A stretch of DNA of 64,000 nucleotides from Haplodiscus bocki. Lineage: Eukaryota. Location: assembly GCA_965655095.1 (NCBI GenBank), contig OZ296654.1, positions 39,928,001 to 39,992,000 of the forward strand, written 5' to 3'. The position numbers and the translations under genes are program-made. The first letter of the stretch is position 1; every line of letters starts with the position of its first letter. A model generated the notes under the pieces. It worked only from the letters and a program-made list of their open reading frames with translations, searched no databases and was not told the DNA's origin. Of this stretch, positions 3,130 to 36,324 are shown piece by piece.

Positions 3130-3255
3130 TTTGACACATAATATCGCCTAATGATTTCGAATCAATCGTCATATATCTTATAAGCCTCTATAAAAACACA
3201 GATTTTTCACTTCTATCCTCAGTCTTAAGTCAGATATTCAACGTATGCTAACACC

Positions 3256-3537: not shown

Positions 3538-3904
3538 AATCAGATCTTGACATCACAACTTTGATAACTCCTAGAGACAGAACTATCCTTTCCTGAATAT
3601 ACATATTTTAGTTTTTTTTGTTTTGGTAACTTGAACAAGAAAAACACAACACTTGTTTCATTGAGTTACGATATCTGAGTTTCCAAAATCCAATTTAGGA
3701 ATTGTATTTTGTTCATTCAAAAGGACAAAATTTTTCTTTGGCATCAGTTTGGCTTGATGAAAGCCAAACTGTATAATTTGCAGTTAGACTTTCTTGAGCG
3801 TATGACAACGTTTGACAGCCCTCGCCATTGCTGCATTCTGTCGAGCGTATACTAATGTTTTCAGTTTCAGTTTCAGTTTATACCAAAAAGTTTCAGTTTT
3901 GAAA

Positions 3905-10836: not shown

Positions 10837-11810
10837 CACTGTTGCGTTACCTCCAAAAGCGGGAAAATTTACCTGCGGAGAGACGCATGAAAAAGACCCC
10901 ACATGCAGTTTACCTTCGCTACATGCAGTTCACCTGTAAAAGACTCAAATTTTTTGCTTCTACGCGGTAAGCTTCTCACGTAGAGTACACACGATGGCAT
11001 GTAATAAAACGCGCAAGTCGCGGGTAAATTCACCTGCAGGCTGCAGGCTAACTTTTCCGAAATTTGCAGTTGAATTCACCTGCGGTGCGGTTGCAGATTG
11101 TTTGCAAACGCGGGTTTTTTTGTTTGCATTTGCTGGCCTTTTCGCCGGCAATGGCAGGTATTTTTGCCTGCAATTGCGGGTATTTTTGTGTGCAATTGCG
11201 GGCATTCTTGTGTGCAATTGCTAATATTTTTGCCTGCAATTGCTTGTTTTTTTCTCTGCAATTGCTGGTATTTTTAAATGCGTTTGCAAGTATTTTTGCC
11301 TGCAATTTCGGGTGTTTCTGCTTGAGATTGCTGGTATTTTTGCCTGCTTTTGCAGGTCTTTTTGCTTGCAGTTGCGGGTATTTTTGTGTGCAATTTCGGG
11401 CATTTTTGCGTGCAATTGCTAGTATTTTTACCTCAAATTGCTTGTTTTTTACCTGCATTTGCCGGTATTTTTAACTGCGTTTGCAAGTATTTTTGCCTGC
11501 AAGTGCGGGTGTTTTTGCCCGCAAAAACAGGCAATTTTGCTTGCCAGTCGCGAGCAAAGTTGAATGAGTTCCGCATGTAAAATTACTTGTAAAGTGCCCG
11601 TTACATTCAGATAAGTTTACAGGCGGCTGCAAGCAATTCGCGTGTATTTTGCGCGAAGAGCTTGCCTCGTAGATGACGATAAATTTACCTGTTTTTACAG
11701 GTAAAGTGCAGGTAACGCATATAAACTGCGTGTGGGGCCTTTTTACATGCGATCCGCAGGTAAAATTACCTGGATTCGCAGGTAATTTTGCACTCGTCAC
11801 TTTTACAGTG
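10837..11810. mobile_element. Non-autonomous DNA transposon with CACTG...CAGTG ends and ~120-bp imperfect TIRs
   Basis: The left end (CACTGT...aatttacctgcgga...aaaaagaccccacatgcagttt...cctgtaaaa) matches the reverse complement of 11680-11810. Confidence 0.7.
11100..11530. repeat. ~22-bp minisatellite inside the DNA element
   Basis: Units like tttttgcctgcaattgcgggta. It produces the repetitive ORFs seen on both strands here. Confidence 0.85.
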
Positions 11811-13022: not shown

Positions 13023-13837
13023 ATGTCAAACAGAACCAGGTTACAATCCGCAATGGACTCTCTCTCATATTGGCTAACATGCAAAAATGAAATTCCAACA
13101 AACGAGGAAGATTTGGACTGTTTCACTTGCGGCTATATGATGCATCTCAACGAAAAGTGCACACAACTTAGTAAAACTGCAATCTTAGGGATAAAAGAGC
13201 TCAGACAAAATGCACTCCTCATCTGCAACAACTGTGTTGCTCTCAAAAAACCTGACAAATTAATTGAAACTGCATCTAAAATTCAACAGCAGGCGCCAAT
13301 TGAGGATAAAAAGTTAAAGTCGCTACAAACTGAAGTGAACGATAATAAGAAAGCGATAACTGACCTGAAAGTTTCTTTCGAGCAAAAGTCAAGTGAACCT
13401 CCAAAACCATCTGCGCCAATCATCAAGACAACAAACACTGCAAAAGATTTTGACGGGATAAGAATACGAGGTCTTCAGAAAAGTGACGCTGAGAGTGCTA
13501 GAGAAAGAAACGAGAAAGATATGAGTGAAGTAAAAGCTACGCTGATTTTTCTAGAAGTAGACTGCGAAATCACCGAACTACGAAAAATAGAAAACAACAA
13601 ATAAACCGTACTAGAACACTAGTGTTTAAAGTCGCAAATAAATGGCATCGAAATCGCATCTTGCTCTCAGTCGCGAAACCAAAAAATTACAGTCAACAGC
13701 TCTTGGTAAGCAGAGAACTTAATGCTACAGAAACGAAACTCGAGATGGAAAGTCTCAAATGGAGGAAGGAGATAATTGAAAATGGGACCAGTCGGTCACA
13801 TATTACAATACGTGACCTAAGTTATATGGAAAAATAG
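13023..13837 (+). pseudogene. LINE ORF1 (PHD finger, coiled coil, RRM-like region)
   Basis: C..CFTCGYMMHLNEKC...LICNNC, coiled coil LKSLQTEVND, IRIRGL motif typical of LINE ORF1. Interrupted near 13604. Confidence 0.65.
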
Positions 13838-13921
13838 GAGAAACATGGAAAGAAGTAGAAATAAGCAAAAAATGAAAATTTGGGAAAGTGACTAACCGCT
13901 GCACCAGTACAAAACAACCTA

Positions 13922-16900
13922 TTGATTCTTCTCTACAATAATCGGAGCTTGATTGTTCTAAGTAAGCGAATATGTTTATCCAATGGAATTTCAATAAGTG
14001 ATAACTATGACCTTCTCTGCTTAACGGAAACTTGGCTAGTAAGTGCAATTCCCGACACCGCATTATTTTTAAATAGCTACTTTATACATAGAAACGACAG
14101 ATTCTCAACTGACGCTAAAAGCAAGCACGGGGGCGTACTAATAGCTGTTAAATCGCGTACTCGACACACTAGAATTCGCATTGATCCAAAGTACTTTGAA
14201 ACAGTGACAGTAAAAATCTCTTTACATGAAGTTGCTCATCTTGTTTGTTGTGTCTACAGTGCGCCAAAATCAGGCCAGTACCGAATTCCACCGCAAATAA
14301 AGATTGACTCGATAGACCTGCTCATTGCGGAATCCAAAAAACTCGGATGTGAAACTATACTGATCGTAGGTGATATAAATTTTGAAAACACAAATTGGAA
14401 GCAAATGCGATCAACTGACCACAGCGAAACTCTCGTTTTATTTTCGAAAGCGGTTTCCCACAATCAATAACTACTAAGAACAAACTACTGGACGTTATTC
14501 TTACAAATAACACTGACCCTGTTTTGAACGTTTCTGTTGATAATAGAGTGAAGAGCCTTTATAAGTCCGATAATCTGCCATATCGGGCTAAGTTTTCAGG
14601 ACAAAGCTGGTACCGAGCAGAATTCAAACGAAAGGATGCCAAGAAAAACGATTTGACGGTCTTTTCTTACACACGAGCTGATTGAGTCTCTTTATCTAAA
14701 CACATCGAAAAAAATTGCTCTGTTCCTTATTGCCTCAGCAATGTTGATATGATGGTTTCGCTGTGGTATGAATGGCTATACAAATGTTTACAATCTCACA
14801 TACCAACGAAGACAAGACATAGTATGAGCCTTGCTCCCTGGGTATCAAATGAAACCTCCAACCTCATTAAAAGGAAACAAACGCTTCAGAAGGCACTTCA
14901 AAAACAAACCAATGAAAACCGTCAGAGGAAATTAGAATTGCTGAATGGAAAAATAATTCTAGCTCTAGAGATTGATCAACGTAACGTCGAGAATACCGTT
15001 TTTGCCGGTGGAAAGTTCTCAGGTTTTCAGAAATAGTTCAAAAATATCAGGAAGACTACACAGTTCCCTGCGGAAATGTTCCTGGAAAATGAAACTGCCA
15101 GAACAGATCTTGAAAAAAATGAGCTTTTCAACATCTTTGCGCAATCTGTCTTCAGTTCAACTGACTATCAAAGCAAACCAGAACTCAAATCACCAATGAA
15201 AATTGAGAAAATGGATTCCACTTAATCCGAAATAACATCTGCTCCTGAGAACTTTGATGTTGCCAAATAGATAGGTCCCGATGGGCTAGGAAAATTACCG
15301 CTCAAAAAACAGTCGAACTCACTGTGCAAATCATTATCACTACTTTTCAACACAATTGCAAATAAACGTGCATATCCAATTGCCTGAAAAACCACCGAAA
15401 TCTTACTCTTCTTCAAAGACGGCCATAAACAAAACGTAGCTAAGTACCGCTTCATATCTCTTGTCTCCTGCACTTCAAAACTTCTAGAGACTTTATTCTT
15501 TTTAAAACTCTATGAAGTAATGAAAGACATAAATGCCCCAGAAAAATACGACTTCCGCAAAAACCGATCCTCCATCACGCAGATGGTAATGTATATGAGT
15601 GAAATATTTGACAACCTCGTTTCAACAACCTTAGCAACCATGTACCTGGACTTCGAAAACGCCTTCGACAAGGTCTCCCATGGAAAGTTATTGGAAAAAT
15701 TGACAAACGAAGGCATCAGAGAAGGTCTGCTAGAACTAATCGAAAACTCTCTGAAAGGAAGAAAGCAGAAAATTAAAATTGGATCATCTGTCTCAAGTGA
15801 ACTTGTCGTGCAAAGTGGCGTCCCACAAGGATCTGTACTTGGACCTTCAATTTTCATCCTTTTTATCAACGTTCTTCCAAAATGTTTCATGTAAACATGC
15901 TTTGGTTGGATATGCGGATGACTATAAGATTGTAGCAAAAAATGGGATAACACTTCAAATTGACGCCCACAAAATATGGAGATGGTGCTCCAGCGATCTC
16001 ATGAGTCTTAATCTGAACAAATGTAAAGTTCTGTGTTTGAAAGGTATAGAAGAACTCACTATACAAGGTCATCAACTTGACAACAGTATCGTTGAAAAAG
16101 ATCTGGGCATCATGATCTCAAACGATCTGACCTGGACAGCACAGACAGAAAAAAGATGCGAGAAAACCATGAAAGCATTTTTCACTATCAAACGAAACAT
16201 TGCCAATGGGACACCCTGGACAACTAGAAAGAATCTTACCGTAGCTACTTCGTTGCGCCGTGGCTTTGCGACTGGCTGCCAAAATTTGCGCAGCACATAC
16301 ATGTTGCTGTGGCCAAAATGTCGACGATTATGGTACTCATGGGCTCGCTTGCAAGAGGAGCGCCGGACGGTTTGCCCGACATGCTTTTTTCAATGATTTT
16401 ATTAGACGATCCTTAGCTTCGGTTGTGGTGCCCTCTGTTTTAGAGCCAGCGAGGTTGTCAAGGTCAGATCCGATGGTGTGACGGCCATGCCTTGGCAGCG
16501 AGGAAAGCCGCTGGTATGGGATGTGACTTCCGTGGATTCCCTTGCCCCGAGCAGAGCGCAACAGCAGGGAAGGTTTTCAACCGAGGCTGAAACCCGAAAA
16601 ACCTTGAAATATGCAAATATCGAGGAGCGGGGATAAATTTTCAAACCAATCGCCATGGATGTCCAAGGAGATTACGGAACTCAAACAGAAACTTTTTTCA
16701 ATTGCCTGACAATGAAAATTATTGACAACACCAGAGAACCCCGCTCCAAAACTTTTTCGTCAACGCATGTCAGTGGCCGTGCAACAATTCAACCTAAGAT
16801 GCCTGACTGGGACCCTTCGAGACGACGTCCAGGAGTCTCTGGAAGAAGTGTTCTATATGTCTCAAAGCTCCTGAGAGAAGGATTTAGTGGCATTACCCAT

Positions 16901-17695: not shown

Positions 17696-20558
17696 ATATT
17701 TCCTTGGGCATTTAGCACTAAATTCAGTTGTATTATTATTATTAGTGTTTTAAGTATTGAAATTTTACGTTGCTGAGAATTCAAAATAGAATGTTTGATT
17801 CAGCACTTTGACCTTATCCCTTGTATCACTGCTACACATGATCTGCCGTAATCTTTTTCGACAACGCACTTGACTGTTGCGGTTTTTGGATGTCTAAAGA
17901 CCAAAATCTGATCCTTCTGTTCCATCAGAGTTTGTTGATAATTTGTTCTTTCCAGAGTTGGTGGTTGAGGGATCATCTCTGTGAGGTTGTCAACTCTTCT
18001 TTCTCGGTAACTCTCGGTTTTGGAAGAAATCCGTTATCTCGTGTCTGAGGTCTCCCAATTAGATGGAAAGAGCTACTGTTTTTCAAGGCGGAAGACTTGC
18101 AAATGAAATTTCGTTTTCAAACACGGACTTCAATGAAATCGCCGCAGTACCGGTACAACATTTCGCTCAATTTCAATTTAGAGTGGGCATCAACTCGAAT
18201 GCCTATGTACATCATTTTATCCATCAATTCTATATATGTAGTTCCAAAGATTCTGTTTTGCAAATGCTAGCTTGTTCTTCTTGTGGGACACTCAGCAGAA
18301 CAGAAATGGTTTTATGGTCAGTGCAAACAAAACGTTTTTTATTTTTTTCTTTCTTGACACAGCGGTTTTCATAGAGTTTCATCAAGCATTTTCTCAGGTA
18401 AGTGGCGAATTGTATCGCTTGTCTCAGCAGTTGCTCGGCAAAAGAATCATGGACCTCGTGATCACAACCTCTACAAATTACTAGAGTTAAGCAGTTTGTA
18501 AAAACAATTTGTGTCTTCATTTAACGCAAGATGTCTCAACTTAAATAAAACATTGCTTGCTATCTCAATAAAATTGTAATTCAGTCGTTATAGTTATGCC
18601 AAGTCAATGCAGTTTCAATACCTATATGTCAAGATTGAAGAAAACTACAAGTTGACTATTTTCAAAACTGCTAAAATAGCTCCGCTTTCAAGCTTCCAGC
18701 GTGAGAAAACCATTCAAAAAATCATCGAAAAAAATTCTTACTATTTAATGAGTGGAGCTCGAAACGTTGCCTGTACAAAATAAGTTTCACTCACTAGCCT
18801 ATGGTGAGAAAGAAGGACTTCTCATTGATTGAGTGTCGTCAAGCCACTCAAAATGAGATAAGTTTTCAGAATCAGAAGACTGTGGAAAATGTTCTGTCCA
18901 CAACCCAAGTACAGAATTTAATGGATTAGAGTCTAGTCATCCTTGTTTCAATCAGATAAGTACGTTAAGCTAACGGGAAAATGTAATTAGGTTTTCACTA
19001 GTAGTAGTAAAAGTAGTAGTAGTACGCTCAGGTCTGGCGCTTTCAGTTCTGTCAAAAACGCCAGTTTTCGGAAAACGCCAAATCTTCTCAACCCTCTCTC
19101 TGAAAAACGCCAGTAACTTTACACTGTCAACTTTGTTTATGAATCATCAGCTATTTTTGTGTTTCAAGGTAGTCCGCTATATTACCGCACTCCTTGACTG
19201 CTTTAATCGAAAATTTGAGCTGAAAGTTTTTTTCAGCTACTACTGGCTCTATTCGATAGTTATGAGGCACTGCTAGTTCAATAACGCCTGTCAAAAATTC
19301 TAAATCAGCCATTTTATAGTTACTACTACTTCTCTCAGTGAGAACGAATTAGTATCTAAAGGAGTAGAATCTGAATCATATTTGGGGTTACTATCTAAAA
19401 ATAACGGCTGCGATCATTTTTTGGGATTTATATCTAAAGATTCTGATACTATTCCTGTTTTTCGATACCCGTTTTGAGAATAATATCTCAAGTCTTGGAT
19501 GTCCCGGTTTCTGAATACCTGTTTTCGAGAATTTTTTCATTATATTAATGTATTTCGGGGCGTCATGAACTATGATAAAATTGCAGGTTGTCTTGAAGGT
19601 ACTAGCATTTTTTGCTGTGATGGTTCTTTTCATTAAAACATTGAGTACAAGGGCTAAATTAACTTGCGGTGCGTTCCCTTCAGAAAACTTTCCCGGTACT
19701 GCCTGTATTGAATTTGAGAAGTTTGCAATTAATCGAAAGCACAGTCACCCAAAAGGTTTTGCGTATATCAAAAGAAAATTCAAAGCAAAAAAAGAACGAG
19801 CCTCAAAAATGAAGAACGATACTGTTCCTGGTCCCCGAGTTGCTTATACGACAACAATCCAAAATTATTTGTAACAGCATTTAAAGTTCATTTGGGGCCC
19901 ATGCTCTTTTTGGCTATTAAAATTTGAGTTCCGTTCAGTTTTTGTGTCACTCTTCAAGCTTTTTATTCTGGATATATCAAATATGAACATCTGTGGTATC
20001 TTTTTGGGGTCTGTATGCTGACTCATGCAGCATAATACTCAACTTACGAACAATCCATTTCGGACGTTTCATGGGGAAACAGGTATTTAGTTGTCATGAG
20101 GAAACAAAACGTTTTCATTCAGAGATGATAGTGAATTCTATGAATATGATTTATTAAAGATGAAAAGTCGAGAAGAATTCTACAAGTTTCAACTAGGTTT
20201 CCCTGGTAGGCTCTTGTTACTTTTAGGGTAAAATCAATTTTTAGTTTTCAGGTGACTGTTGTTTGAGCTGTTTCCCGTTGGAATATAGCGCACGTTAGAT
20301 TCTCAAACAGGTTGTTGCAATTGGAAACAAGCTGTTCAGCCTCTCCGAAATCACCGACTTTCGGTTTGATGAAAAGAAAGTGCCTCAAAGTAGGCATTTA
20401 GTCATTGGATATACCAGTTCTGTGCCTAACGGGGACAGAAATCTAATTTACATTTTTTTTGAGTGGTTAGGTTTTGTTTATTGCATTTTATTTAATACTC
20501 CCTTGCAATTGATACATTTTCAGATTTTAAAATTTGTTGTGCAGTTTTCTCGGCTTCA

Positions 20559-23500
20559 ATGGAACCGAGGAGCCGGCGAAAATTGATTGGAATCCTCCAC
20601 GACTCATATCGTCAGAATCCCCTAAATTTCCAAGATGGGGACCCCGAAGACTTTATTGTCCAGGACACCGAGTTTGCTGGAAAAGGACTTTTCGTAAAGC
20701 GTTTTTTCCGGAAAGGCGAGTATCTTTTGAACTACCGAGGTAACAAGAGTAATGACAACAATAGTGATACTGTGTACATGTTCGATGTTGGAAAACCCGA
20801 AGGCATAGTGATCGACGCAACGAGTAGACCTGATTGCATGGGGCGCTACATAAATGATATTGACCCGTTTAATGTTCAAAATTGCCACCCGATAAAACAA
20901 TTGAATGATAGCAAGGATGTTCTTATTTGCTTTTTTGCAACAAAGAATATTGACACCGGACAAGAACTGAGATATGATTACAAAACAAACTATGCCCCTT
21001 GGAGGAAAGCAAGTTTTTTCAGTGAACCTAAAGGAGAGACTCAGTCTGTTGTCAAGGCGAGGAAAAAGAAAAAGGCCCCTGGAGAGCAACCTGATGGTAC
21101 ACAAAGTCATGAACCCAGTACAGATTATGGCGACCAGCAGAATAGTACAAGCAGTCAGAATGAAAAGGATATTGGAGAAAGTTTTCCAAAAAAATGCGTG
21201 GAAACTCAGATCGAAGTTGGGCTAGATGAAATGGGAAGTGAAGAGCTTGAGAGCATTCCGAACCTTGATAGCATTCCAAATGTTGATTCGGGTGAAAATT
21301 TTGAGAAGAGAAAGACTAGTAGACAAGATAGAGAATTCGACTCTCGCAGAACCGACGCAGCAGATAATGCAGTTGAACTCAATTTGAGCATCCAACACTG
21401 CCAAAATCCCATTCAACAGGATGACCAAACAATGACGTACACAAATCTGTTCTCAGAGGATGGGAATTCTTCGAACATCTCCTTCCGGGAGTTGAACTCA
21501 GAAGGTGATGTCACAACAGAGTCAGAGTCGACGGCCAGTAACAAATCTGATAGTAGTGAAGATGAAGAGCACGATGAGGATTCCTTCGGTGGAACGCCTA
21601 TGGTCCGAAGAAGCAGGAAGAAGAAACGACCGGACTTGGAGGAATGTAATATTTGCAGAAAAAAAGTGAAGAAAATGAGGGACCACTTAACTAATTCGCA
21701 TAAACTGAACCAAAACCTCCGAGTGAAACAGTTCATTTCAACCTATTATTCAACAATTGAAACTAAAAGATGTTATCAGTGCTTAGTCTGTTTAAAACGA
21801 ATGAGCTTCAAACATACTCATCCAAAGCACCATAAACTGGAAAGAATATTTAACCGACTGGACGAGAAATTTTTTCCCATTGAAATTCAATTGGCTCTAA
21901 GAGAATATCGGGAGTCTTACCGGAAGCCCTTTCATGAAATAGTTCTAGAGTTTGATGTCCACTGTCAAGGACTTGCAGATGACGGAGATGTTGTGTCTGT
22001 GTCGTCTATGTCAACAACTCTTCGTCAGTTTCTCGGTTTTGTTGTTTCTGAGACTAAAAAATTTAGCGAAACAACGTCCTTGGCACCTTGCATTCGCAAA
22101 TTTATGACTGACCACAACTTGAAACGAATAACAATATCCAACTATCTCTGCAAACTGAAGAAGTTCATGCGTTATTTGGAGTTACATTCCGGAGACAGGT
22201 ACCCTGATTTCAAAAAACACCCGTGGGAAAAGATTTTGGATGAAGTGAGAGTACGGTACCAAGTCGGATCGCAGAAGGAGAAAAGGAGAAAAACCAAAAA
22301 ATTGTTTGAGAAGGTCCCAAGTCTTCAAGAAGTTCAAAAGCTCAATTTTCAAGTTCAAGATTTTCTCAACAAGGACCTTGAAGAGCAAGTGCTTCATTTC
22401 AAAGAACTTTCCGTGCTCAATTTTTTAATTTTGTCTTTCCGTTTGAACTGCAGGGCTGGACCTTTGCTAAATCTAACTTGGAAGGACGTTGCAACAATAA
22501 AAAAAACAGGCCAGTTAGATACAGACCAGCATAAGACAGGTCGCTATTACGACGTCACAATTGCCATAGAGAAAGACCAACACAAATGGTTGAAACGTCT
22601 CAAAAGCCGGTTCGTCAAAGAATTTAAGCTTCCGCCAGATCTGGTTTTTGCCTCAATAAACAACAAAGTTGAACATTCGATGGCGAAAAACATCAAAACA
22701 GTTTTGTCTGATTTGTTTGATCCGAATTTGTCCACCAAAGATTTTCATGCCACGTCCATCAGAAAGATGTGGGACACCCATTTCCATAACAACAGGAAAA
22801 AGTACAAAGATTCCATTATCACTTCACACCTGCATCAGACCGGCCATACACAAGGAACTGCTCTCCAAAATTATGTTGCTCCGCCTGACAAAAGAGAGGT
22901 CCTAAACGCGTATCTTGAAGAGTTGTCCAAACTTCAAGACCAGACATTGACTGATGAACCAAGAATTGATCTCACTCTATTAGAACCTGCAAACAATTTG
23001 CCCCGTCAATCAAGCTCTACCCCACGACAACCGAGTTCAACTGATCCAAGCTCTAACCCACGGCAACCGAGTTCAACAGATCCAAGCTGTACCCCACGGC
23101 AACCAAGTTCAACAGATCCAAGCTCTACCCCACGGCAACCAAGTTCAACAGATCCAAGCTCTACCCCACGGCAACCAAGTTCAATTCAGCCAAGATCTAC
23201 GCCACGCCAATTAAATTCAACAGAGCCGAGATCTACACCATGCCAATTAAATTCAACAGAGCCCAGATATACACCATGCCAATCAAGCTTAAGACATCCC
23301 ATCACCTTTGATGAATCATCTCAGAATGACACTCCTCTTAGTCTAGACAAAGAAGAGCTCGTACCCCTTCAGAAACTTCGACAGAAAAAAAAGGGGCACC
23401 TCACAGAAGCAGCGCCGGATAATTATGATTCCAGTGGTTCTGACTTTCATCCCGAGGAAGCTGAAGACCATAGTGACGATAGTTGTGCAAAAGCTGCACG

Positions 23501-23765
23501 AATTAGAGGAAAGATACTTTGTTCGGTTGGCGCATCTCAACGTGATTTATTCATCAAGTCATTGCAAAGTCATAGGAATCACGTGCCAACTGATGATGAG
23601 AAACGGGCTCTTGAATTATTTTATTATGTAAAACATGGGGTGACGAAAAAGGATGTCATTGCTACAATCAAAAAAGCAGGGATTAACTTCAAAGATCCTC
23701 AAACTATGATCAGGCTCTATAACAAAATAAAATTTGCCTGCTGTACGTATTTACGAGAGTTTTAA
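20559..23765 (+). CDS. SET-domain lysine methyltransferase - zinc finger - tyrosine recombinase fusion, 1068 aa
   Basis: SET (KMT5A/SET8-like): GKGLF..FRKGEYLLNYRG, IDAT, GRYIND, GQELRYDY..PW. C2H2: CNIC..HLTNSH, with a second CLVC..H..H. YR catalytic set: NCRAG (R at 22452), HKTG, ATSIRK, GHT, QNY (Y at 22872). Confidence 0.9.
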   Translation: MEPRSRRKLIGILHDSYRQNPLNFQDGDPEDFIVQDTEFAGKGLFVKRFFRKGEYLLNYRGNKSNDNNSDTVYMFDVGKPEGIVIDATSRPDCMGRYINDIDPFNVQNCHPIKQLNDSKDVLICFFATKNIDTGQELRYDYKTNYAPWRKASFFSEPKGETQSVVKARKKKKAPGEQPDGTQSHEPSTDYGDQQNSTSSQNEKDIGESFPKKCVETQIEVGLDEMGSEELESIPNLDSIPNVDSGENFEKRKTSRQDREFDSRRTDAADNAVELNLSIQHCQNPIQQDDQTMTYTNLFSEDGNSSNISFRELNSEGDVTTESESTASNKSDSSEDEEHDEDSFGGTPMVRRSRKKKRPDLEECNICRKKVKKMRDHLTNSHKLNQNLRVKQFISTYYSTIETKRCYQCLVCLKRMSFKHTHPKHHKLERIFNRLDEKFFPIEIQLALREYRESYRKPFHEIVLEFDVHCQGLADDGDVVSVSSMSTTLRQFLGFVVSETKKFSETTSLAPCIRKFMTDHNLKRITISNYLCKLKKFMRYLELHSGDRYPDFKKHPWEKILDEVRVRYQVGSQKEKRRKTKKLFEKVPSLQEVQKLNFQVQDFLNKDLEEQVLHFKELSVLNFLILSFRLNCRAGPLLNLTWKDVATIKKTGQLDTDQHKTGRYYDVTIAIEKDQHKWLKRLKSRFVKEFKLPPDLVFASINNKVEHSMAKNIKTVLSDLFDPNLSTKDFHATSIRKMWDTHFHNNRKKYKDSIITSHLHQTGHTQGTALQNYVAPPDKREVLNAYLEELSKLQDQTLTDEPRIDLTLLEPANNLPRQSSSTPRQPSSTDPSSNPRQPSSTDPSCTPRQPSSTDPSSTPRQPSSTDPSSTPRQPSSIQPRSTPRQLNSTEPRSTPCQLNSTEPRYTPCQSSLRHPITFDESSQNDTPLSLDKEELVPLQKLRQKKKGHLTEAAPDNYDSSGSDFHPEEAEDHSDDSCAKAARIRGKILCSVGASQRDLFIKSLQSHRNHVPTDDEKRALELFYYVKHGVTKKDVIATIKKAGINFKDPQTMIRLYNKIKFACCTYLREF
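23010..23288 (+). repeat. 36-bp in-frame minisatellite (STPRQPSSTDPS repeats)
   Basis: About 7-8 degenerate 12-aa repeats after the YR domain. Confidence 0.9.
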
Positions 23766-23784
23766 TTTCCAGTATAGACTTCTT

Positions 23785-24520
23785 TTGCTTCTATGCTTGA
23801 TTATATGCGGTGTTATACCTTCTCCAAAGAACTCACTTGCATCTATTGCTGATTTTATTTTTGGGCTTTACCTTCTCTAGTGAACTGATTTGCTTCTATT
23901 TTTGATTATATGCGGGATTATACCTTCTCCAAAAAACTCACTTGCATCTATTGCTGATTTTGTTTTTGGGCTGTACTTTCTCCAGTGAACTGATTTGCTT
24001 CTATTTTTGATTATATGCGGGATTATACCTTCTCCAAAAAACTCACTTGCATGTATTACGGATTTTGTTTTTGGGCTGTACCTTCTCCAGTGAACTGATT
24101 TGCTTCTATTTTTGATTATATGCGGGATTATACCTTCTCCAAAAAACTCACTTGCATGTATTACTGATTTTGTTTTTGGGCTTTACCTTCTCTAGTGAAC
24201 TGATTTGCTTCTATTTTTGATTATATGCGGGATTATACCTTCTCCAAAAAACTCACTTGCATCTATTGCTGATTTTGTTTTTGGGCTGTACTTTCTTTCT
24301 CCAGTGAACTGATTTGCTTCTATTTTTGATTATATGCGGGATTATACCTTCTCCAAAAAACTCACTTGCATGTATTACGGATTTTGTTTTTGGGCTGTAC
24401 CTTCTCCAGTGAACTGATTTGCTTCTATTCTTGATTATATGCGGGATTATACCTTCTCCAAAAAACTCACTTGCTTCTATTGCTGATTTTATTTGGGGTT
24501 GAATCTTCTCCAGTGGATTC
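23785..24520. repeat. 105-bp tandem repeat, ~7 copies, itself a dimer of related ~52-bp subunits
   Basis: TCTCCAAA recurs at 23821, 23926, 24031, 24136, 24241, 24350 and 24455. Confidence 0.95.
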
Positions 24521-27432
24521 AATTGCATCTGTTAATGGTTGCTTTGGAGATTTATCTTACCCATTGAGCTCAACTACTTCTTGAGTAAAACATGTGAATT
24601 CTTGATGTCCGATTTTTCGGATAGTGCCGCAAACGTGTCGGAAGTGTGATTAGAAATTTCAATCAAATTTGATCGTTTCAGATATCAAATGTTAATAACT
24701 TCTTACACCGAGGCTTTTGCTTGGCTGTTTGATTTCTGTGAATCTACTTCAAAACAACTCCCAGCAGAGAAAGATTCTTTTCTGCAACCCTTGGAGCCCT
24801 GTGTTATTCGAATGGAATATATCAACTAAGAAGCAATTTGCGCTCAAGAAGACGATCATGCATACAACGCGGTCATTTCATTTCACCCTAGCTCTCAACA
24901 AAACATGAAAATGGCAACAATAACTCTACGAACATTCCTCACATGCTCCATTCAGAGCTCCAAGGTCGATGCTCCATCTCCAGCTGCTCACTACCACTCC
25001 TCTTTCAAATGCACCCTCAACTAAATCTGCGACCGCTAGCGTATGCTCAAGACTTGGAAACGGAGTAATCCACGCTTCGTCTCAGGAAAATAACTTGAAC
25101 TCCAAAAATTGTTACATGGTCTGGAAATGGGCCACAAAACAGTGGAACTAACGAGATTGGCAGCAGCACCGCCGAAAATAAAGACTTCGTGGGTTCTGAT
25201 CACTATTATTCAGAAGTGCAATATTAACATAACGCCTATGATGATGCAACCTTGACTCGCAATGTCTATTTGCCTTCAACGTTACCGCCAATCGCTGCCC
25301 AGTCGAGGATTGGATTGCACTCGCTGACTATCAATCGACGAGTTTTCGCCAGCGATCTCAAAACCCTTCAATCCATCGGAGGATTTATTCCGAGCCATCC
25401 AATTCTAATGTGTTCTACAAGGACACTAATGATCTGTGGAGTTCAACTGTGGTTTGAGGACTGTATCAAATCTGAATAGAACATATGAATATGCGGGATT
25501 AGTTGAATCGGCGGAGTATAGTTAGCAGTTGAAACCACTTACAGAACTAATTATGCAGTCCAGCTGTGAATCAGTTGCAACTCTTGAGCGACGATGAGCA
25601 GTGCAATGTGTCTGGCGTGCGTTTTATGCATGCTCATTTAAATCTTAATGCCTTTTTGTAGGAATGTAGATTTTACACTTGCGGAAGTAAGTGTTATGTC
25701 CCAGGCTTTTGACACATTGTTTTTTCCGATCCTTTCATAGCTCTCATGTGTGCCTACATTTTACTTCTGTATCCCGTCGGCACAAGGATTGCGAAGCACA
25801 GCTTCGCCTGTGTGTGTAAACCTGTGAAAAAAAATAAGTGTTGGTAACAGACTCTACCGGAGTCTGTCATGATTGCTGGCTCAGTATTAACGAAGGGGGT
25901 TAGAGAATTCAAAAAATTGGAAACGTTGAGCTCTTTTCAATCAAAACGTGATGGAAGTGTGTTTTCTGTGAGGTTGCTCGGATCAATAAGTTGCAGGGTC
26001 GGTACTTAGAAGTTATTTTGTTTCGTTTCTGTACACCTGAACAAACTGAAATGTTGGCACTTGGGTTTATCAAGGCTTTGGAGGAATGGTATAGCTCCTT
26101 GAAAAAGTGTTGAATTTTTATTTAGAGCTTCATTTTGCATCACTAATTCAAAGTCATCATTAGCAACTACAGTTCTGTTCTTGAGTCCATGTCCAGATAA
26201 AGTGCCTACATTCCCCACTTCAGCTTCTTTTATATTTATTTGGATCTGTTCTTCCGTCATCAGCTGTCCCGTCATCCTTTCTCGTTCCTAAACCCCTGAA
26301 ACAACAAAGCTTACCTACAAATCTGAGAACCATTATCTTTGACTTCTCGAGTTTGAACCCGCGAAATTTCTACAAGGGTACTGTTTTTCTTTGTTTTACA
26401 AATCCTTTGTGATCAGTGCCTTATGACTTCTCATGCTGAACGATTGTTCACTTTTTGAATGTTTTGTTTTTGCCCGATTTCAATTGCTTAAACGAGTTTT
26501 TCAATCGATTTATTGTTGATGATCGTCACATCACCTACACCTGAGAAAACGATAATACATTTATGCTAACACTGATTGATGTGATTTTTCATTCTTGTTT
26601 GAGATCGTCAGAAAAAAGACGTTTGAATAAAATATCTGAAACAGTCTATCATGTCATCTCGGTGACTTTTTTTGAACTTCTAACAGTGATACAGCTCACT
26701 CAGTTGGTTGTTCACCTACACAATGTGTTGTAGAAATCATCATGTTGAGACGATGCTTCTGTATGCCTATATATCAAATAATCCTAATTGTTTTTCTGAA
26801 ATTTGTGAGCGACTTTGGTCAAGAGATCAAAAGAGTATGTCCCAATGGTGGTGGATGGTCTGAACTGGATTGTTTGTCTGGGGGTGATATTCCATAAGTA
26901 GACTTTTTTGAGCTCAATAATTATCAATACTATGATTAAAATCTGGTGCGTTAATGAGTTACCAACGTTTTGAGAAACATGCTGATTTACATGAATGAGT
27001 TGAGAACGTTTGGAAAATTTACTTTTTTGGGATATGAATGATGAAGGGTTTTTCTCACGGTCCTCTAACTGCAAAAAAGTTAACATTCTTTCAGTTGGCA
27101 GGGAGGATTTCGGAATATCACTCGCACAATCATTATTGAAATTTTCATTAGTTTGGTGCAGTAGAATAGAGACTCTGCCGTAGTCAGATCTTTCTGTTAT
27201 TGACGAAGTACTCGGTAACCTGAGACGGTTACATTTTCTGAAAACTTGTGGAGATGTATCATGATCACAGATCAAGATACTAGGACGTTTATAAACGCCA
27301 GTAGTAGCAAGATTTTGCGCCAGGAAGTTGAAAATTGCCTGTAGTAGTAGGAATTGAATCCAGCCAATTCCTGTAAAACACTTAATATCGCCATTTGTCA
27401 ATTACGCCAGAAATTGAAAACGCCAGGGCTTC

Positions 27433-27464
<32 letters not shown>

Positions 27465-29201
27465 CATGGATTTATGGATTTACCCACTGGTTTCAAAAAC
27501 TTCGGATTTGTCTATCCTGTCAGTTTCAAGCCATCGGATTTTTCAGGTTTTTTTATTCCGTTGCAGTTTCCACAGGAGGATATCAGTTGCATTGTACAGC
27601 GATCCTCTGCACTTTAATAGTTTTCCACCATTTTCCAGTACAGATTATTGACACTCTTCCTACTCCATAAACGAGGCTCTTTTTCTAGAACTTTTCTGAG
27701 ATTAGTCAGTCTTTTCATTCTAACGTAGAAGTTTTCTATGGTTTTTTGTAGTCTGGTCTTTGGCTGCAAAACTTCTCGACTTCCTAGTCGTTCTTATCAG
27801 TCAGATATACCATGCCACAGTCGTATTTCCGTTTTAGGAACGATACAAATTACAGTATGTTGAACCAATTAAGGTAATGAGAAATCGGTAGCAGTTAGAG
27901 GTTTTTCAGTCTCTTTTTTACAAGTCTTCTTGTTAATGTTTTAAGTATTGAAATTTTACGTTGCTGAGAATTCAAAATAGAAGGTTTGATTCAGCACTTT
28001 GACCTTATCCCTTTTATCACTGCTACACATGATCTGCCGTAATCTTTTTCGACAACGTACTTGACTGTTGCGGTTTTTGGATGTCTAAAGACCAAAATCT
28101 GATCCTTCTGTTCCATCAGAGTTTGTTGATAATTTGTTCTTTCCAGAGTTGGTGGTTGAGGGATCATCTCTGTGAGGTTGTCAACTCTTCTTTCTCGGTA
28201 ACTCTCGGTTTTGGAAGAAATCCGTTATCTCGTGTCTGAGGTCTCCCAATTAGATGGAAAGAGCTACTGTTTTTCAAGGCGGAAGACTTGCAAATGAAAT
28301 TTCGTTTTCAAACACGGACTTCAATGAAATCGCCGCAGTACCGGTACAACATTTCGCTCAATTTCAATTTAGAGTGGGCATCAACTCGAATGCCTATGTA
28401 CATCATTTTATCCATCAATTCTATATATGTAGTTCCAAAGATTCTGTTTTGCAAATGCTAGCTTGTTCTTCTTGTGGGACACTCAGCAGAACAGAAATGG
28501 TTTTATGGTCAGTGCAAACAAAACGTTTTTTATTTTTTTCTTTCTTGACACAGCGGTTTTCATAGAGTTTCATCAAGCATTTTCTCAGGTAAGTGGCGAA
28601 TTGTATCGCTTGTCTCAGCAGTTGCTCGGCAAAAGAATCATGGACCTCGTGATCACAACCTCTACAAATTACTAGAGTTAAGCAGTTTGTAAAAACAATT
28701 TGTGTCTTCATTTAACGCAAGATGTCTCAACTTAAATAAAACATTGCTTGCTATCTCAATAAAATTGTAATTCAGTCGTTATAGTTATGCCAAGTCAATG
28801 CAGTTTCAATACCTATATGTCAAGATTGAAGAAAACTACAAGTTGACTATTTTCAAAACTGCTAAAATAGCTCCGCTTTCAAGCTTCCAGCGTGAGAAAA
28901 CCATTCAAAAAATCATCGAAAAAAATTCTTACTATTTAATGAGTGGAGCTCGAAACGTTGCCTGTACAAAATAAGTTTCACTCACTAGCCTATGGTGAGA
29001 AAGAAGGACTTCTCATTGATTGAGTGTCGTCAAGCCACTCAAAATGAGATAAGTTTTCAGAATCAGAAGACTGTGGAAAATGTTCTGTCTACAACCCAAG
29101 TACAGAATTTAATGGATTAGAGTCTAGTCATCCTTGTTTCAATCAGATAAGTACGTTAAGCTAACGGGAAAATGTAATTAGGTTTTCACTAGTAGTAGTA
29201 A

Positions 29202-29259
<58 letters not shown>

Positions 29260-30995
29260 CATGGATTTATGGATTTAACCACTGGTTTCAAAAACTTCGG
29301 ATTTGTCTATCCTGTCAGTTTCAAGCCATCGGATTTTTCAGGTTTTTTTATTCCGTTGCAGTTTCCACAGGAGGATATCAGTTGCATTGTACAGCGATCC
29401 TCTGCACTTTAATAGTTTTCCACCATTTTCCAGTACAGATTATTGACACTCTTCCTACTCCATAAACGAGGCTCTTTTTCTAGAACTTTTCTGAGATTAG
29501 TCAGTCTTTTCATTCTAACGTAGAAGTTTTCTATGGTTTTTTGTAGCCTGGTCTTTGGCTGCAAAACTTCTCGACTTCCTAGTCGTTCTTATCAGTCAGA
29601 TATACCATGCCACAGTCGTATTTCCGTTTTAGGAACGATACAAATTACAGTATGTTGAACCAATTAAGGTAATGAGAAATCGGTAGCAGTTAGAGGTTTT
29701 TCAGTCTCTTTTTTACAAGTCTTCTTGTTAATGTTTTAAGTATTGAAATTTTACGTTGCTGAGAATTCAAAATAGAAGGTTTGATTCAGCACTTTGACCT
29801 TATCCCTTGTATCACTGCTACACATGATCTGCCGTAATCTTTTTCGACAACGTACTTGACTGTTGCGGTTTTTGGATGTCTAAAGACCAAAATCTGATCC
29901 TTCTGTTCCATCAGAGTTTGTTGATAATTTGTTCTTTCCAGAGTTGGTGGTTGAGGGATCATCTCTGTGAGGTTGTCAACTCTTCTTTCTCGGTAACTCT
30001 CGGTTTTGGAAGAAATCCGTTATCTCGTGTCTGAGGTCTCCCAATTAGATGGAAAGAGCTACTGTTTTTCAAGGCGGAAGACTTGCAAATGAAATTTCGT
30101 TTTCAAACACGGACTTCAATGAAATCGCCGCAGTACCGGTACAACATTTCGCTCAATTTCAATTTAGAGTGGGCATCAACTCGAATGCCTATGTACATCA
30201 TTTTATCCATCAATTCTATATATGTAGTTCCAAAGATTCTGTTTTGCAAATGCTAGCTTGTTCTTCTTGTGGGACACTCAGCAGAACAGAAATGGTTTTA
30301 TGGTCAGTGCAAACAAAACGTTTATTTTTTTCTTTCTTGACACAGCGGTTTTCATAGAGTTTCATCAAGCATTTTCTCAGGTAAGTGGCGAATTGTATCG
30401 CTTGTCTCAGCAGTTGCTCGGCAAAAGAATCATGGACCTCGTGATCACAACCTCTACAAATTACTAGAGTTAAGCAGTTTGTAAAAACAATTTGTGTCTT
30501 CATTTAACGCAAGATGTCTCAACTTAAATAAAACATTGCTTGCTATCTCAAAAAAATTGTAATTCAGTCGTTATAGCTATGCCAGGTCAATGCAGTTTCA
30601 ATACCTATATGTCAAGATTGAAGAAAACTACAAGTTGACAATTTTCAAAACTGCTAAAATAGCTCCGCTTTCAAGCTTCCAGCGTGAGAAAACCATTCAA
30701 AAAATCATCGAAAAAAATTCTTACTATTTAATGAGTGGAGCTCGAAACGTTGCCTGTACAAAATAAATTTCACTCACTAGCCTATGGTGAGAAAGAAGGA
30801 CTTCTCATTGATTGACTGTCGTCAAGCCACTCAAAATGAGATAAGTTTTCAGAATCAGAAGACTGTGGAAAATGTTCTGTCCACAACCCAAGTACAGAAT
30901 TTAATGGATTAGAGTCTAGTCATCCTTGTTTCAATCAGATAAGTACGTTAAGCTAACGGGAAAATGTAATTAGGTTTTCACTAGTAGTAGTAAAG

Positions 30996-31039
<44 letters not shown>

Positions 31040-34000
31040 CATGGATTTATGGATTTACCCACTGGTTTCAAAAACTTCGGATTTGTCTATCCTGTCAGTT
31101 TCAAGCCATCGGATTTTTCAGGTTTTTTTATTCCGTTGCAGTTTCCACAGGAGGATATCAGTTGCATTGTACAGCGATCCTCTGCACTTTAATAGTTTTC
31201 CACCATTTTCCAGTACAGATTATTGACACTCTTCCTACTCCATAAACGAGGCTCTTTTTCTAGAACTTTTCTGAGATTAGTCAGTCTTTTCATTCTAACG
31301 TAGAAGTTTTCTATGGTTTTTTGTAGTCTGGTCTTTGGCTGCAAAACTTCTCGAGTTCCTAGTCGTTCTTATCAGTCAGATATACCATGCCACAGTCGTA
31401 TTTCCGTTTTAGGAACGATACAAATTACGGTATGTTGAACCAATTAAGGTAATGAGAAATCGGTAGCAGTTAGAGGTTTTTCAGTCTCTTTTTTACAAGT
31501 CTTCTTGTTAATGTTTTAAGTATTGAAGTTTTACGTTGCTGAGAATTCAAAATAGAAGGTTTGATTCAGCACTTTGACCTTATCCCTTGTATCACTGCTA
31601 CACATGATCTGCCGTAATCTTTTTCGACAACGTACTTGACTGTTGCGGTTTTTGGATTTCTAAAGACCAAAATCTGATCCTTCTGTTCCATCAGAGTTTG
31701 TTGATAATTTGTTCTTTCCAGAGTTGGTGGTTGAGGGATCATCTCTGTGAGGTTGTCAACTCTTCTTTCTCGGTAACTCTCGGTTTTGGAAGAAATCCGT
31801 TATCTCGTGTCTGAGGTCTCCCAATTAGATGGAAAGAGCTACTGTTTTTCAAGGCGGAAGACTTGCAAATGAAATTTCGTTTTCAAACACGGACTTCAAT
31901 GAAATCGCCGCAGTACCGGTACAACATTTCGCTCAATTTCAATTTAGAGTGGGCATCAACTCGAATGCCTATGTACATCATTTTATCCATCAATTCTATA
32001 TATGTAGTTCCAAAGATTCTGTTTTGCAAATGCTAGCTTGTTCTTCTTGTGGGACACTCAGCAGAACAGAAATGGTTTTATGGTCAGTGCAAACAAAACG
32101 TTTTTTATTTTTTTCTTTCTTGACACAGCGGTTTTCATAGAGTTTCATCAAGCATTTTCTCAGGTAAGTGGCGAATTGTATCGCTTGTCTCAGCAGTTGC
32201 TCGGCAAAAGAATCATGGACCTCGTGATCACAACCTCTACAAATTACTAGAGTTAAGCAGTTTGTAAAAACAATTTGTGTCTTCATTTAACGCAAGATGT
32301 CTCAACTTAAATAAAACATTGCTTGCTATCTCAATAAAATTGTAATTCAGTCGTTATAGCTATGCCAAGTCAATGCAGTTTCAATACCTATATGTCAAGA
32401 TTGAAGAAAACTACAAGTTGACAAAATTTTTCAAAACTGCTAAAATAGCTCCGCTTTCAAGCTTCCAGCGTGAGAAAACCATTCAAAAAATCATCGAAAA
32501 AAATTCTTACTATTGAATGAGTGGAGCTCGAAACGTTGCCTGTACAAAATAAGTTTCACTCACTAGCCTATGGTGAGAAAGAAGGACTTCTCATTGATTG
32601 AGTGTCGTCAAGCCACTCAAAATGAGATAAGTTTTCAGAATCAGAAGCTTGTGGAAAATGTTCTGTCCACAACCCAAGTACAGAATTTAATGGATTAGAG
32701 TCTAGTCATCCTTGTTTCAATCAGATAAGTACGTTAAGCTGACGGGAAAATGTAATTAGGTTTTCACTAGTAGTAGTAAAAGTAGTAGTAGTAGTAGTAG
32801 TAGTAGACATGGATTTATGGATTTACCCACTGGTTTCAAAAACTTCGGATTTGTCTATCCTGTCAGTTTCAAGCCATCGGATTTTTCAGGTTTTTTTATT
32901 CCGTTGCAGTTTCCACAGGAGGATATCAGTTGCATTGTACAGCGATCCTCTGCACTTTTATAGTTTTCCACCATTTTCCAGTACAGATTATTGACACTCT
33001 TCCTACTCCATAAACGAGGCTCTTTTTCTAGAACTTTTCTGAGATTAGTCAGTCTTTTCATTCTAACGTAGAAGTTTTCTATGGTTTTTTGTAGTCTGGT
33101 CTTTGGCTGCAAAACTTCTCGAGTTCCTAGTCGTTCTTATCAGTCAGATATACCATGCCACAGTCGTATTTCCGTTTTAGGAACGATACAAATTACAGTA
33201 TGTTGAACCAATTAAGGTAATGAGAAATCGGTAGCAGTTAGAGGTTTTTCAGTGTCTTTTTTACAAGTCTTCTTGTTAATGTTTTAAGTATTGAAATTTT
33301 ACGTTGCTGAGAATTCAAAATAGAAGGTTTGATTCAGCACTTTGACCTTATCCCTTGTATCACTGCTACACATGATCTGCCGTAATCTTTTTCGACAACG
33401 TACTTGACTGTTGCGGTTTTTGGATGTCTAAAGACCAAAATCTGATCCTTCTGTTCCATCAGAGTTTGTTGATAATTTGTTCTTTCCAGAGTTGGTGGTT
33501 GAGGGATCATCTCTGTGAGGTTGTCAACTCTTCTTTCTCGGTAACTCTCGGTTTTGGAAGAAATCCGTTATCTCGTGTCTGAGGTCTCCCAATTAGATGG
33601 AAAGAGCTACTGTTTTTCAAGGCGGATGACTTGCAAATGAAATTTCGTTTTCAAACACGGACTTCAATGAAATCGCCGCAGTACCGGTACAACATTTCGC
33701 TCAATTTCAATTTAGAGTGGGCATCAACTCGAATGCCTATGTACATCATTTTATCCATCAATTCTATATATGTAGTTCCAAAGATTCTGTTTTGCAAATG
33801 CTAGCTTGTTCTTCTTGTGGGACACTCAGCAGAACAGAAATGGTTTTATGGTCAGTGCAAACAAAACGTTTATTTTTTTCTTTCTTGACACAGCGGTTTT
33901 CATAGAGTTTCATCAAGCATTTTCTCAGGTAAGTGGCGAATTGTATCGCTTGTCTCAGCAGTTGCTCGGCAAAAGAATCATGGACCTCGTGATCACAACT

Positions 34001-34541
34001 TCTACAAATTACTAGAGTTAAGCAGTTTGTAAAAACAATTTGTGTCTTCATTTAACGCAAGATGTCTCAACTTAAATAAAACATTGCTTGCTATCTCAAT
34101 AAAATTGTAATTCAGTCGTTATAGTTATGCCAAGTCAATGCAGTTTCAATACCTATATGTCAAGATTGAAGAAAACTACAAGTTGACTATTTTCAAAACT
34201 GCTAAAATAGCTCCGCTTTCAAGCTTCCAGCGTGAGAAAACCATTCAAAAAATCATCGAAAAAAATTCTTACTATTTAATGAGTGGAGCTCGAAACGTTG
34301 CCTGTACAAAATAAGTTTCACTCACTAGCCTATGGTGAGAAAGAAGGACTTCTCATTGATTGAGTGTCGTCAAGCCACTCAAAATGAGATAAGTTTTCAG
34401 AATCAGAAGACTGTGGAAAATGTTCTGTCCACAACCCAAGTACAGAATTTAATGGATTAGAGTCTAGTCATCCTTGTTTCAATCAGATAAGTACGTTAAG
34501 CTGACGGGAAAATGTAATTAGGTTTTCACTAGTAGTAGTAA

Positions 34542-34599
<58 letters not shown>

Positions 34600-36324
34600 C
34601 ATGGATTTATGGATTTACCCACTGGTTTCAAAAACTTCGGATTTGTCTATCCTGTCAGTTTCAAGCCATCGGATTTTTCAGGTTTTTTTATTCCGTTGCA
34701 GTTTCCACAGGAGGATATCAGTTGCATTGTACAGCGATCCTCTGCACTTTAATAGTTTTCCACCATTTTCCAGTACAGATTATTGACACTCTTCCTACTC
34801 CATAAACGAGGCTCTTTTTCTAGAACTTTTCTGAGATTAGTCAGTCTTTTCATTCTAACGTAGAAGTTTTCTATGGTTTTTTGTAGTCTGGTCTTTGGCT
34901 GCAAAACTTCTCGACTTCCTAGTCGTTCTTATCAGTCAGATATACCATGCCACAGTCGTATTTCCGTTTTAGGAACGATACAAATTACAGTATGTTGAAC
35001 CAATTAAGGTAATGAGAAATCGGTAGCAGTTAGAGGTTTTTCAGTCTCTTTTTTACAAGTCTTCTTGTTAATGTTTTAAGTATTGAAATTTTACGTTGCT
35101 GAGAATTCAAAATAGAAGGTTTGATTCAGCACTTTGACCTTATCCCTTGTATCACTGCTACACATGATCTGCCGTAATCTTTTTCGACAACGTACTTGAC
35201 TGTTGCGGTTTTTGGATTTCTAAAGACCAAAATCTGATCCTTCTGTTCCATCAGAGTTTGTTGATAATTTGTTCTTTCCAGAGTTGGTGGTTGAGGGATC
35301 ATCTCTGTGAGGTTGTCAACTCTTCTTTCTCGGTAACTCTCGGTTTTGGAAGAAATCCGTTATCTCGTGTCTGAGGTCTCCCAATTAGATGGAAAGAGCT
35401 ACTGTTTTTCAAGGCGGAAGACTTGCAAATGAAATTTCGTTTTCAAACACGGACTTCAATGAAATCGCCGCAGTACCGGTACAACATTTCGCTCAATTTC
35501 AATTTAGAGTGGGCATCAACTCGAATGCCTATGTACATCATTTTATCCATCAATTCTATATATGTAGTTCCAAAGATTCTGTTTTGCAAATGCTAGCTTG
35601 TTCTTCTTGTGGGACACTCAGCAGAACAGAAATGGTTTTATGGTCAGTGCAAACAAAACGTTTTTTATTTTTTTCTTTCTTGACACAGCGGTTTTCATAG
35701 AGTTTCATCAAGCATTTTCTCAGGTAAGTGGCGAATTGTATCGCTTGTCTCAGCAGTTGCTCGGCAAAAGAATCATGGACCTCGTGATCACAACCTCTAC
35801 AAATTACTAGAGTTAAGCAGTTTGTAAAAACAATTTGTGTCTTCATTTAACGCAAGATGTCTCAACTTAAATAAAACATTGCTTGCTATCTCAATAAAAT
35901 TGTAATTCAGTCGTTATAGCTATGCCAAGTCAATGCAGTTTCAATACCTATATGTCAAGATTGAAGAAAACTACAAGTTGACAATTTTCAAAACTGCTAA
36001 AATAGCTCCGCTTTCAAGCTTCCAGCGTGAGAAAACCATTCAAAAAATCATCGAAAAAAATTCTTACTATTTAATGAGTGGAGCTCGAAACGTGGCCTGT
36101 ACAAAATAGGTTTCACTCACTAGCCTATGGTGAGAAAGAAGGACTTCTCATTGATTGAGTGTCGTCAAGCCACTCAAAATGAGGTAAGTTTTCAGAATCA
36201 GAAGCTTGTGGAAAATGTTCTGTCCACAACCCAAGTACAGAATTTAATGGATTAGAGTCTAGTCATCCTTGTTTCAATCAGATAAGTACGTTAAGCTGAC
36301 GGGAAAATGTAATTAGGTTTTCAC

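Follow-up and report, generated by a model that had tools for sequence, protein, structure and literature searches.

The stretch of DNA analysed here, hereafter called the window, comprises 64,000 nucleotides from Haplodiscus bocki (contig OZ296654.1, positions 39,928,001 to 39,992,000) and contains an insertion of 8.41 kb (19025-27434) that carries one tyrosine recombinase gene and, at both ends, arrays of a short reiterated motif, in the following called boxes, whose positions are kept among diverged relatives. This element interrupts a (TAG)n tract. The tract belongs to unit one of a tandem array (unit length 1.79 kb) that spans 17736-36835 and consists of about six units with 98-99% identity. 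Each unit has such a tract of 8-23 repeats, followed by ATGGATTTATGGATTT, and only the first one is occupied. The framework of the locus is formed by three features:

18999-19024, plus strand: left (TAG)n tract of the target microsatellite, uninterrupted in the five empty paralogous units; in the model given below it would be the overlap side at the left junction site (attL)
20559-23765, plus strand: single intact open reading frame (ORF) of 1068 amino acids (aa), the sole coding region conserved between subfamilies
27436-27464, plus strand: right (GTA)n tract of the target microsatellite

The five other array units (29190, 30982, 32768, 34530 and 36325) can be used as empty sites because they have the same flanks and an uninterrupted tract. 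Excision of the insertion in silico restores the repeat, one junction 'A' being assignable to either side, and beyond this ambiguity of one nucleotide (nt) no bases were gained or lost between empty and filled sites. No target-site duplication was found in this comparison, and a repeat search of 18500-28000 gave no terminal direct or inverted pair longer than the 13-nt box. A second copy (locus L011), located on another contig of the same assembly, is 99.56% identical and has unrelated flanks but identical junctions. Since the match between both copies runs exactly from tract to tract, the mobile unit is the whole 8.4 kb.

The ORF encodes a Cre-like two-domain tyrosine recombinase with the residues R632, K659, R735, H763 and Y772, which in order and spacing fit the superfamily and are invariant or nearly so in full-length relatives. 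The distance from H763 to Y772 is nine residues, as is the His-to-Tyr distance in Cre. Position 3 before the second Arg, usually a His, is occupied by Thr, and a His sits five residues before. An AlphaFold model of aa 440-880 (predicted local distance difference test, pLDDT, 68) reveals a core-binding and a catalytic domain. Compared with the PDB by Foldseek, this model gave as first 37 matches exclusively tyrosine recombinases or their kin, with Cre at the top and XerA, Tn1549 Int and the protelomerase TelA among them; lambda Int followed at ranks 40 and 45. Matches reached a probability of about 1.0 and template modelling (TM) scores of 0.4-0.53 over ~370 columns at modest E-values (3.5e-3 at best). 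On the profile level the integrase family PHROG 216 was matched with an E-value of 7e-6 by the relative P0037 and of 4e-3 by the window protein.

The recombinase is preceded by a SET domain (aa 41-142, Pfam E-value 1e-7) and two short C2H2-like zinc fingers (aa 363-425) and is followed by a conserved C-terminal helical domain (aa about 985-1066, five predicted helices, pLDDT 79). For the latter Foldseek proposed Fur-type and sigma-54 DNA-binding domains at an E-value of about 2, which is non-significant, so that a DNA-binding role of this domain stays a guess. Pfam searches with the recombinase, zinc-finger and C-terminal parts yielded nothing above threshold, and NCBIfam gave no match. Neither a reverse transcriptase nor a second conserved gene was found when the coding regions of six subfamilies were compared.

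Both ends of the element are occupied by the boxes and by spacers that separate the outermost box from the tract (offsets are relative to the element ends):

19025-19033, plus strand: left 9-nt spacer CGCTCAGGT, from the tract to the inverted hexamer; its length is 9 in the nine complete insertions (six subfamilies) and the left end of L005 (a seventh), its sequence is family-specific
19034-19039, minus strand: terminal box in inverted orientation (minus-strand reading CGCCAG), A/T-rich flank to 19046; TGGC at +11 in all six families
19054-19064, plus strand: left direct box 1, AAAAACGCCAG, offset +36, position kept within 2 nt in six families
19071-19081, plus strand: left direct box 2, GAAAACGCCAA, offset +53
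19103-19113, plus strand: left direct box 3, AAAAACGCCAG, offset +85
19238-19248, minus strand: inverted composite GCCAG-TAGTAG, about +214 to +224; also in L001, L002, L007 and L008, in L003 degenerate to CCAG
19286 and 19308: weaker boxes, CGCCTG and GCCA, respectively
27294-27307, plus strand: right composite AACGCCAG-TAGTAG, offset -138
27318-27323, plus strand: right box CGCCAG, offset -116
27336-27350, plus strand: degenerate composite TGCCTG-TAGTAGTAG, positional homologue of the -100 composite of the relatives
27363-27366, plus strand: right box core GCCA, offset -72, common to all six families
27389-27393, plus strand: right box CGCCA, offset -45
27405-27410, plus strand: right box CGCCAG, offset -29
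27417-27426, plus strand: terminal right box AAAACGCCAG, offset -13
27427-27435, plus strand: right 9-nt spacer GGCTTCGAA (GTA register), cross-family consensus N-G-[CA]-T-[TC]-[AC]-G-A-[AT]; length 9 also in the complete insertions and the right end of L009

The original prediction, which was made from the letters of the window, had given box positions at 19056, 19072, 19104, 27293, 27317, 27404 and 27417 as well as short AGT/ACT runs at 19238, 19321, 27301 and 27341, and all of them are correct. The run at 19238 is part of the inverted composite GCCAG-TAGTAG and that at 27341 supplies the TAG of the degenerate composite at -100; the run at 19321 has no box. An inverted repeat near the ends with 11 of 13 matching positions had been described as well. 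In the window it is present, as the 13-mer TTGAAAACGCCAG (27414-27426) agrees to this extent with the reverse complement of CTGGCGCTTTCAG (19034-19046), the terminal hexamers lying 8 nt (right) and 9 nt (left) inside the element ends. It is not conserved as a 13-mer in the relatives, however, which have kept only the GCCA core and the 9-nt distance.

The hexamer CGCCAG occurs 12 times in the window (both strands), and seven of these occurrences are terminal, within ~230 bp in total (binomial P 6e-15), as are the four copies of AACGCCAG that the window has on both strands. When a weight matrix was trained only on other subfamilies, the eight best matches of the whole window were all terminal (P 1e-14).

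Conservation of the motifs among relatives had been set beforehand as a test, which the proposal passes clearly. A word-based protein search gave nine relatives, the eight closer ones with 43-67% identity, and their loci were supplemented by two more from 90% clusters; one locus (L006) belongs to a very distant relative. The sample comprises nine complete insertions including that of the window, the right end of L009 and the left end of L005, altogether seven subfamilies, in all of which identity, orientation and position of the boxes are kept; the stretches separating them have diverged. The recombinases of the ten further insertions are 43-66% identical to that of the window. By blastn the subfamilies are unalignable beyond the ORF, the termini excepted. 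On the left, TGGC of the inverted box is located at exactly +11 in six families and direct boxes follow at +36, +53 and +85/86; further in, an inverted composite GCCAG-TAG(TAG) is found at about +214 to +221 (six subfamilies), with boxes near +248 and +263. On the right, direct boxes occur at -13, -29, -45, -72, about -100 (often as TAGTAG composite) and about -119, with more up to -150. Between families 98% (left) and 90% (right) of the box-core columns are identical versus 48-50% of the remaining columns. The density of GCCA on the plus strand is 26-41 per kb in the termini versus 1.9-4.7 per kb in the interior, and among 20,000 random interior control sets none shared even a single offset.

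Weight matrices that left out one family at a time placed 7-11 of their top 20 matches per locus in the termini (P 2e-9 to 9e-17, six loci). A cluster scan of the DNA of all loci found clusters at element ends everywhere, with the signature -+++ on the left and +++... on the right; the sole extra cluster is located inside the left arm of L008. The same scan revealed the left end of L005, which is cut off from its gene by a nested retrotransposon. Terminal and inner boxes have the common consensus AAA[AC]CGCCA[GT] with a core of about 6 bp. In the GTA register every insertion can be written as (GNA)n / 9 nt / inverted hexamer ... hexamer / 9 nt / (GNA)n, in which the right spacer is semi-conserved across families. 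What is conserved is the GCCA core together with an A/T-rich flank on its 5' side and the 9-nt spacing from the tract.

Several observations on these loci can be added. The commonest box variant has TGCCA instead of CGCCA, and GGCCA is found too, the GCCA core being invariant; a change from C to T at the CpG of the box is what methylation-driven decay would yield in older copies. The left end of L005 (3831-3940), a subfamily with 43% identity, has a short degenerate GTA tract, a 9-nt spacer, ATGGCG and three direct boxes. The retrotransposon nested between this end and the gene (L005 4882-8616) is of the non-LTR (long terminal repeat) type with PHD, endonuclease and reverse transcriptase. In L006 a different 15-nt motif, TCCTACAAAGCGCAC, is present in eight copies (five direct, three inverted) at 3173-3580, just 3' of the gene. 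The protein of that locus (P0009) is 27% identical and has no SET domain, and the element ends were not found on its 3.8-kb scaffold. Reiterated end motifs may be general in the lineage and may co-evolve with the protein. A tandem arrangement of element, tract and element was looked for in L008, and none was seen.

With respect to target choice all insertions have the same orientation of the repeat strand relative to the gene (P about 0.002) and the same register. Two independent copies, L003 and L012 of subfamily 3, reside in (AGG)n rather than (AGT)n, and their termini closely resemble those of the sister subfamily 4 (L002, L004), the proteins being 59% identical. That the arms were kept while the tract changed is as expected if the decisive match were between the tract of the mobile form and the target, i.e. 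if exchange occurred within the tract; a changed protein specificity would be compatible with the AGG switch as well. Strand exchange inside the AGT tract had been part of the original prediction, and it is supported indirectly by uniform register and orientation, by empty sites without extra bases and by the (AGG)n sister subfamily. The flanks of subfamily 3 were located at L003:6373-6528 and 13670-13940 and at L012:7233-7361 and 14204-14325. In L003 the left flank is compound, with (AGG)n(AGC)n(AGG)n, ~47 AGT units and five AGG units before the element, and (AGG)n(AGC)n(AGG)n recurs in the right flank; an AGT-type element could have left the long AGT block within this AGG tract as a trace.

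Taken together, we consider it probable that the boxes represent cis-acting recombination sites of a single-gene Crypton-like transposon that moves into trinucleotide microsatellites by its tyrosine recombinase, and most likely this enzyme would itself dock on them. We infer from the sequence that the enzyme, or its zinc-finger part, would bind the boxes, cut at the positions given below, form a circle and excise without a scar. If joined in an excised circle, the two ends would run from a box over 9 nt, (GTA)k and a further 9 nt to the inverted box. With k = 2 this core would be symmetric, measure about 36 bp and fall into the loxP/FRT size class. Two recombinase protomers would dock on the terminal inverted boxes, and their Cre-like catalytic domains would cut at the boundaries between spacer and tract. 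About two GTA units would then form the asymmetric overlap that needs a match to the target; this match would fix orientation and register, and excision would leave only the microsatellite. The other boxes (left: three direct ones and inverted composites; right: six to eight direct ones) would load extra protomers and so build an asymmetric left/right complex able to capture a bare microsatellite, like lambda attP captures attB.

A lambda-style division into core and accessory (arm) sequences, as originally proposed, is not evident. Since all boxes have one consensus of ~6 bp, one module probably reads all of them. The first candidate is the zinc-finger pair because two fingers would read about 6 bp, which matches the box core; the Cre-like N-terminal domain and the C-terminal helical domain are alternative candidates. 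A wider proposal, which we put forward tentatively and regard as possible rather than likely, is a eukaryotic tyrosine recombinase transposon with a lambda-like intasome. Its zinc fingers would dock protomers on the fixed boxes, tract homology at the circle junction would mainly pick the target and a change of the tract would retarget the element. If true, a swap of the tract from GTA to GGA would redirect it, as the (AGG)n subfamily suggests to have occurred in nature, and animal cells would possess a native integrase system that leaves no scar and is retargetable by nature.

A number of results weigh against this mechanism. The recombinase is unmatched by the Pfam families Phage_integrase and DUF3504 at E-values up to 10, and a profile search of PDB sequences with it was blank. 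The conserved hexamers are found 9 bp from the presumed cut sites and the conserved bases 10-15 bp off the presumed core centre, and the left spacer is not conserved between subfamilies. Moreover, some families that appear to be recent have a degenerate terminal box on the right (CGCCTG in L002 and L004, CGGCGG in L003 and L012), so that for this box the form CGCCAG cannot be a strict requirement. Contigs from public runs that cover 18700-24699 are short and end at the tract. Scans of metagenome contigs for the predicted circle junction and for the right-end pattern gave no match each, which is uninformative as the host is probably absent from this collection.

In a related explanation all boxes are accessory and none is a core. 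The true core for a Cre-like clamp would then be formed by the 9-nt spacers and the tract, or the Cre-like N-terminal domain would read every box and the zinc fingers would be otherwise employed, for which the reading of the third FRT repeat by Flp offers a parallel. The one consensus of terminal and inner boxes, the semi-conserved right spacer and the degenerate terminal right box in subfamilies 3 and 4 fit this explanation, which we nevertheless hold to be unlikely since the inverted left box keeps its exact offset of +11 throughout the families and the 9/9 symmetry suggests a particular role of the terminal pair. Sequence alone cannot separate core boxes from these all-accessory variants.

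The remaining explanations deny the boxes a role in recombination by this enzyme. As an A-tract with a CGCC-like motif, present also upstream of the gene of an element with a SET domain, the boxes might be sites for host transcription factors or promoter or insulator sites which the element carries to control expression or chromatin. They occur at both ends, however, including downstream of the gene, with positions fixed within 2 nt to the termini and not to the ORF, whose start is 1.2 to >3 kb away, and the two terminal boxes are inverted to each other with equal distances to the tract, all of which makes this role very improbable; E2F-like or other host-factor sites are likewise not favoured, as the positions are locked to the termini. 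Microsatellites flank every copy, and the element might make the tracts or carry them along as tails, like tailed retroelements do; the boxes would then be functionless relics of shared ancestry. Against this stand the presence of the tract in the five empty paralogous sites (8-19 units, versus ~13 at the filled site), box cores that are 90-98% identical versus 48-50% for the neighbouring columns and the lack of a reverse transcriptase, so that only a slight chance is left to it. Finally, the ends of Ac/Ds, En/Spm, Mu and Tn7 typically contain reiterated motifs in subterminal position, which raises the question whether another enzyme, e.g. a DDE transposase acting on subterminal repeats, moves the element with the tyrosine recombinase as cargo. 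This is hardly credible in view of the missing target-site duplication, of termini without an inverted repeat beyond the box and of the recombinase ORF being the sole conserved gene and co-occurring with the boxes in all subfamilies. A chance or low-complexity origin of the boxes is ruled out by the enrichment, matrix and conservation tests.

No other class of eukaryotic DNA transposons is as poorly understood as the Cryptons. In structure the element qualifies as one: it has only a tyrosine recombinase, lacks long terminal repeats and carries at either junction one and the same short sequence, which matches the target. Like the Cryptons of the model of Goodwin 2003, which are assumed to integrate as a circle and to be excised scarlessly, it has a single tyrosine recombinase gene and no reverse transcriptase. 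Activity of Cryptons has been directly seen only in Chlamydomonas, where the active CryptonF-1_cRei has a short terminal sequence matching the target and excises cleanly (PMC9977147). Instead of a 5-bp word the window element targets a trinucleotide microsatellite. Animal Cryptons were reported to lack terminal repeats, recognisable ends and a C-terminal domain (PMC3212892); in contrast, the window element has ~4 to 8 boxes per end at fixed positions as well as a SET domain, zinc fingers and a C-terminal domain. The lack of a DUF3504 match argues against a close relationship to CryptonA. In the full-text literature no description of the present family or of such end arrays in Cryptons was found, Repbase reports being outside this coverage. 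The Crypton-like element type is already known, and the end architecture with its fixed box arrays is the new part.

Among site-specific recombination systems lambda attP/attB is similar: a complex donor site, a few hundred bp long and with reiterated sites in either arm, recombines with a simple target, and the orientation is set by an asymmetric overlap, which in the present family is predicted. Where lambda has inverted core sites around an overlap of 6-8 bp that donor and target have in common, the present family has inverted boxes at an equal distance (9 nt) from the tract in all insertions. In lambda, however, arm and core sites differ in sequence and are bound by different Int domains, whereas the boxes have one consensus. 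With loxP/Cre and FRT/Flp the element has in common the best fold match (Cre) and a predicted core (6+9, about 6, 9+6 bp) of the 34-bp class with inverted half-sites around an asymmetric spacer, and the native FRT site also contains an extra direct repeat. Unlike in loxP and FRT it is distal bases, 10-15 bp away from the centre, that are conserved, the inner parts of the half-sites differ between left and right, and there are many extra boxes.

Several copies of a short motif per end, with a number and spacing that are unlike on the left and right and would render the ends functionally asymmetric, are also typical of the TnsB sites in Tn7 L/R, Mu L1-3/R1-3, the inverted repeat/direct repeat (IR/DR) structure of Sleeping Beauty and the AAACGG motifs of Ac/Ds. 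These transposons use DDE transposases and produce target-site duplications, whereas the window element has a tyrosine recombinase, and unlike in such multi-site ends its left inner boxes oppose the left terminal box. Tyrosine recombinases with C2H2 domains that target repeats, namely telomere repeats, also occur in endogenous nimaviruses (PMC10871703). Nimaviruses, however, are giant viral genomes in (TAACC)n, and box arrays do not figure in the consulted part of the source (PMC10871703).

What the family offers is an intact enzyme, exact boundaries, a pair of copies with 99.6% identity and a defined, conserved set of candidate binding sites. This means that end finding, cutting and target choice by a Crypton are now open to direct bench tests, and that testable end sequences are provided for an animal Crypton-like transposon, a group reported without terminal repeats. 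The (AGG)n subfamily appears to be a natural experiment in target switching. The proposed mechanism would explain how such an element can live harmlessly and scar-free in microsatellites, a mode of residence that would also hide its past activity from standard annotation.

Some further features of the element and the window deserve mention. An ORF of 205 aa on the minus strand (26784-27401), overlapping with the right arm, is absent from other subfamilies and hence probably no gene. The C-terminal linker of the recombinase ORF contains an in-frame repeat of 36 bp (PRQPSSTDPSST-like, 6.9 copies, 23011-23260), and a 105-bp tandem repeat (6.9 copies, 23784-24515) begins directly after the stop codon of this ORF; both are also present in L011. 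Contigs of three public runs, including a coral metagenome of 2017 with ~90-95% identity, join 20606 to 23247 via a single G. They represent an internally deleted copy without about aa 16-896 of the ORF, which suggests non-autonomous derivatives that rely on the element ends. The other repeats of the window are unrelated to the element and comprise four units of ~4.6 kb with 95-98% identity (45371-64000), a 1-kb duplication with 97% identity (1-1016 versus 2523-3538) and a 22/66-bp tandem array at 11103-11524.

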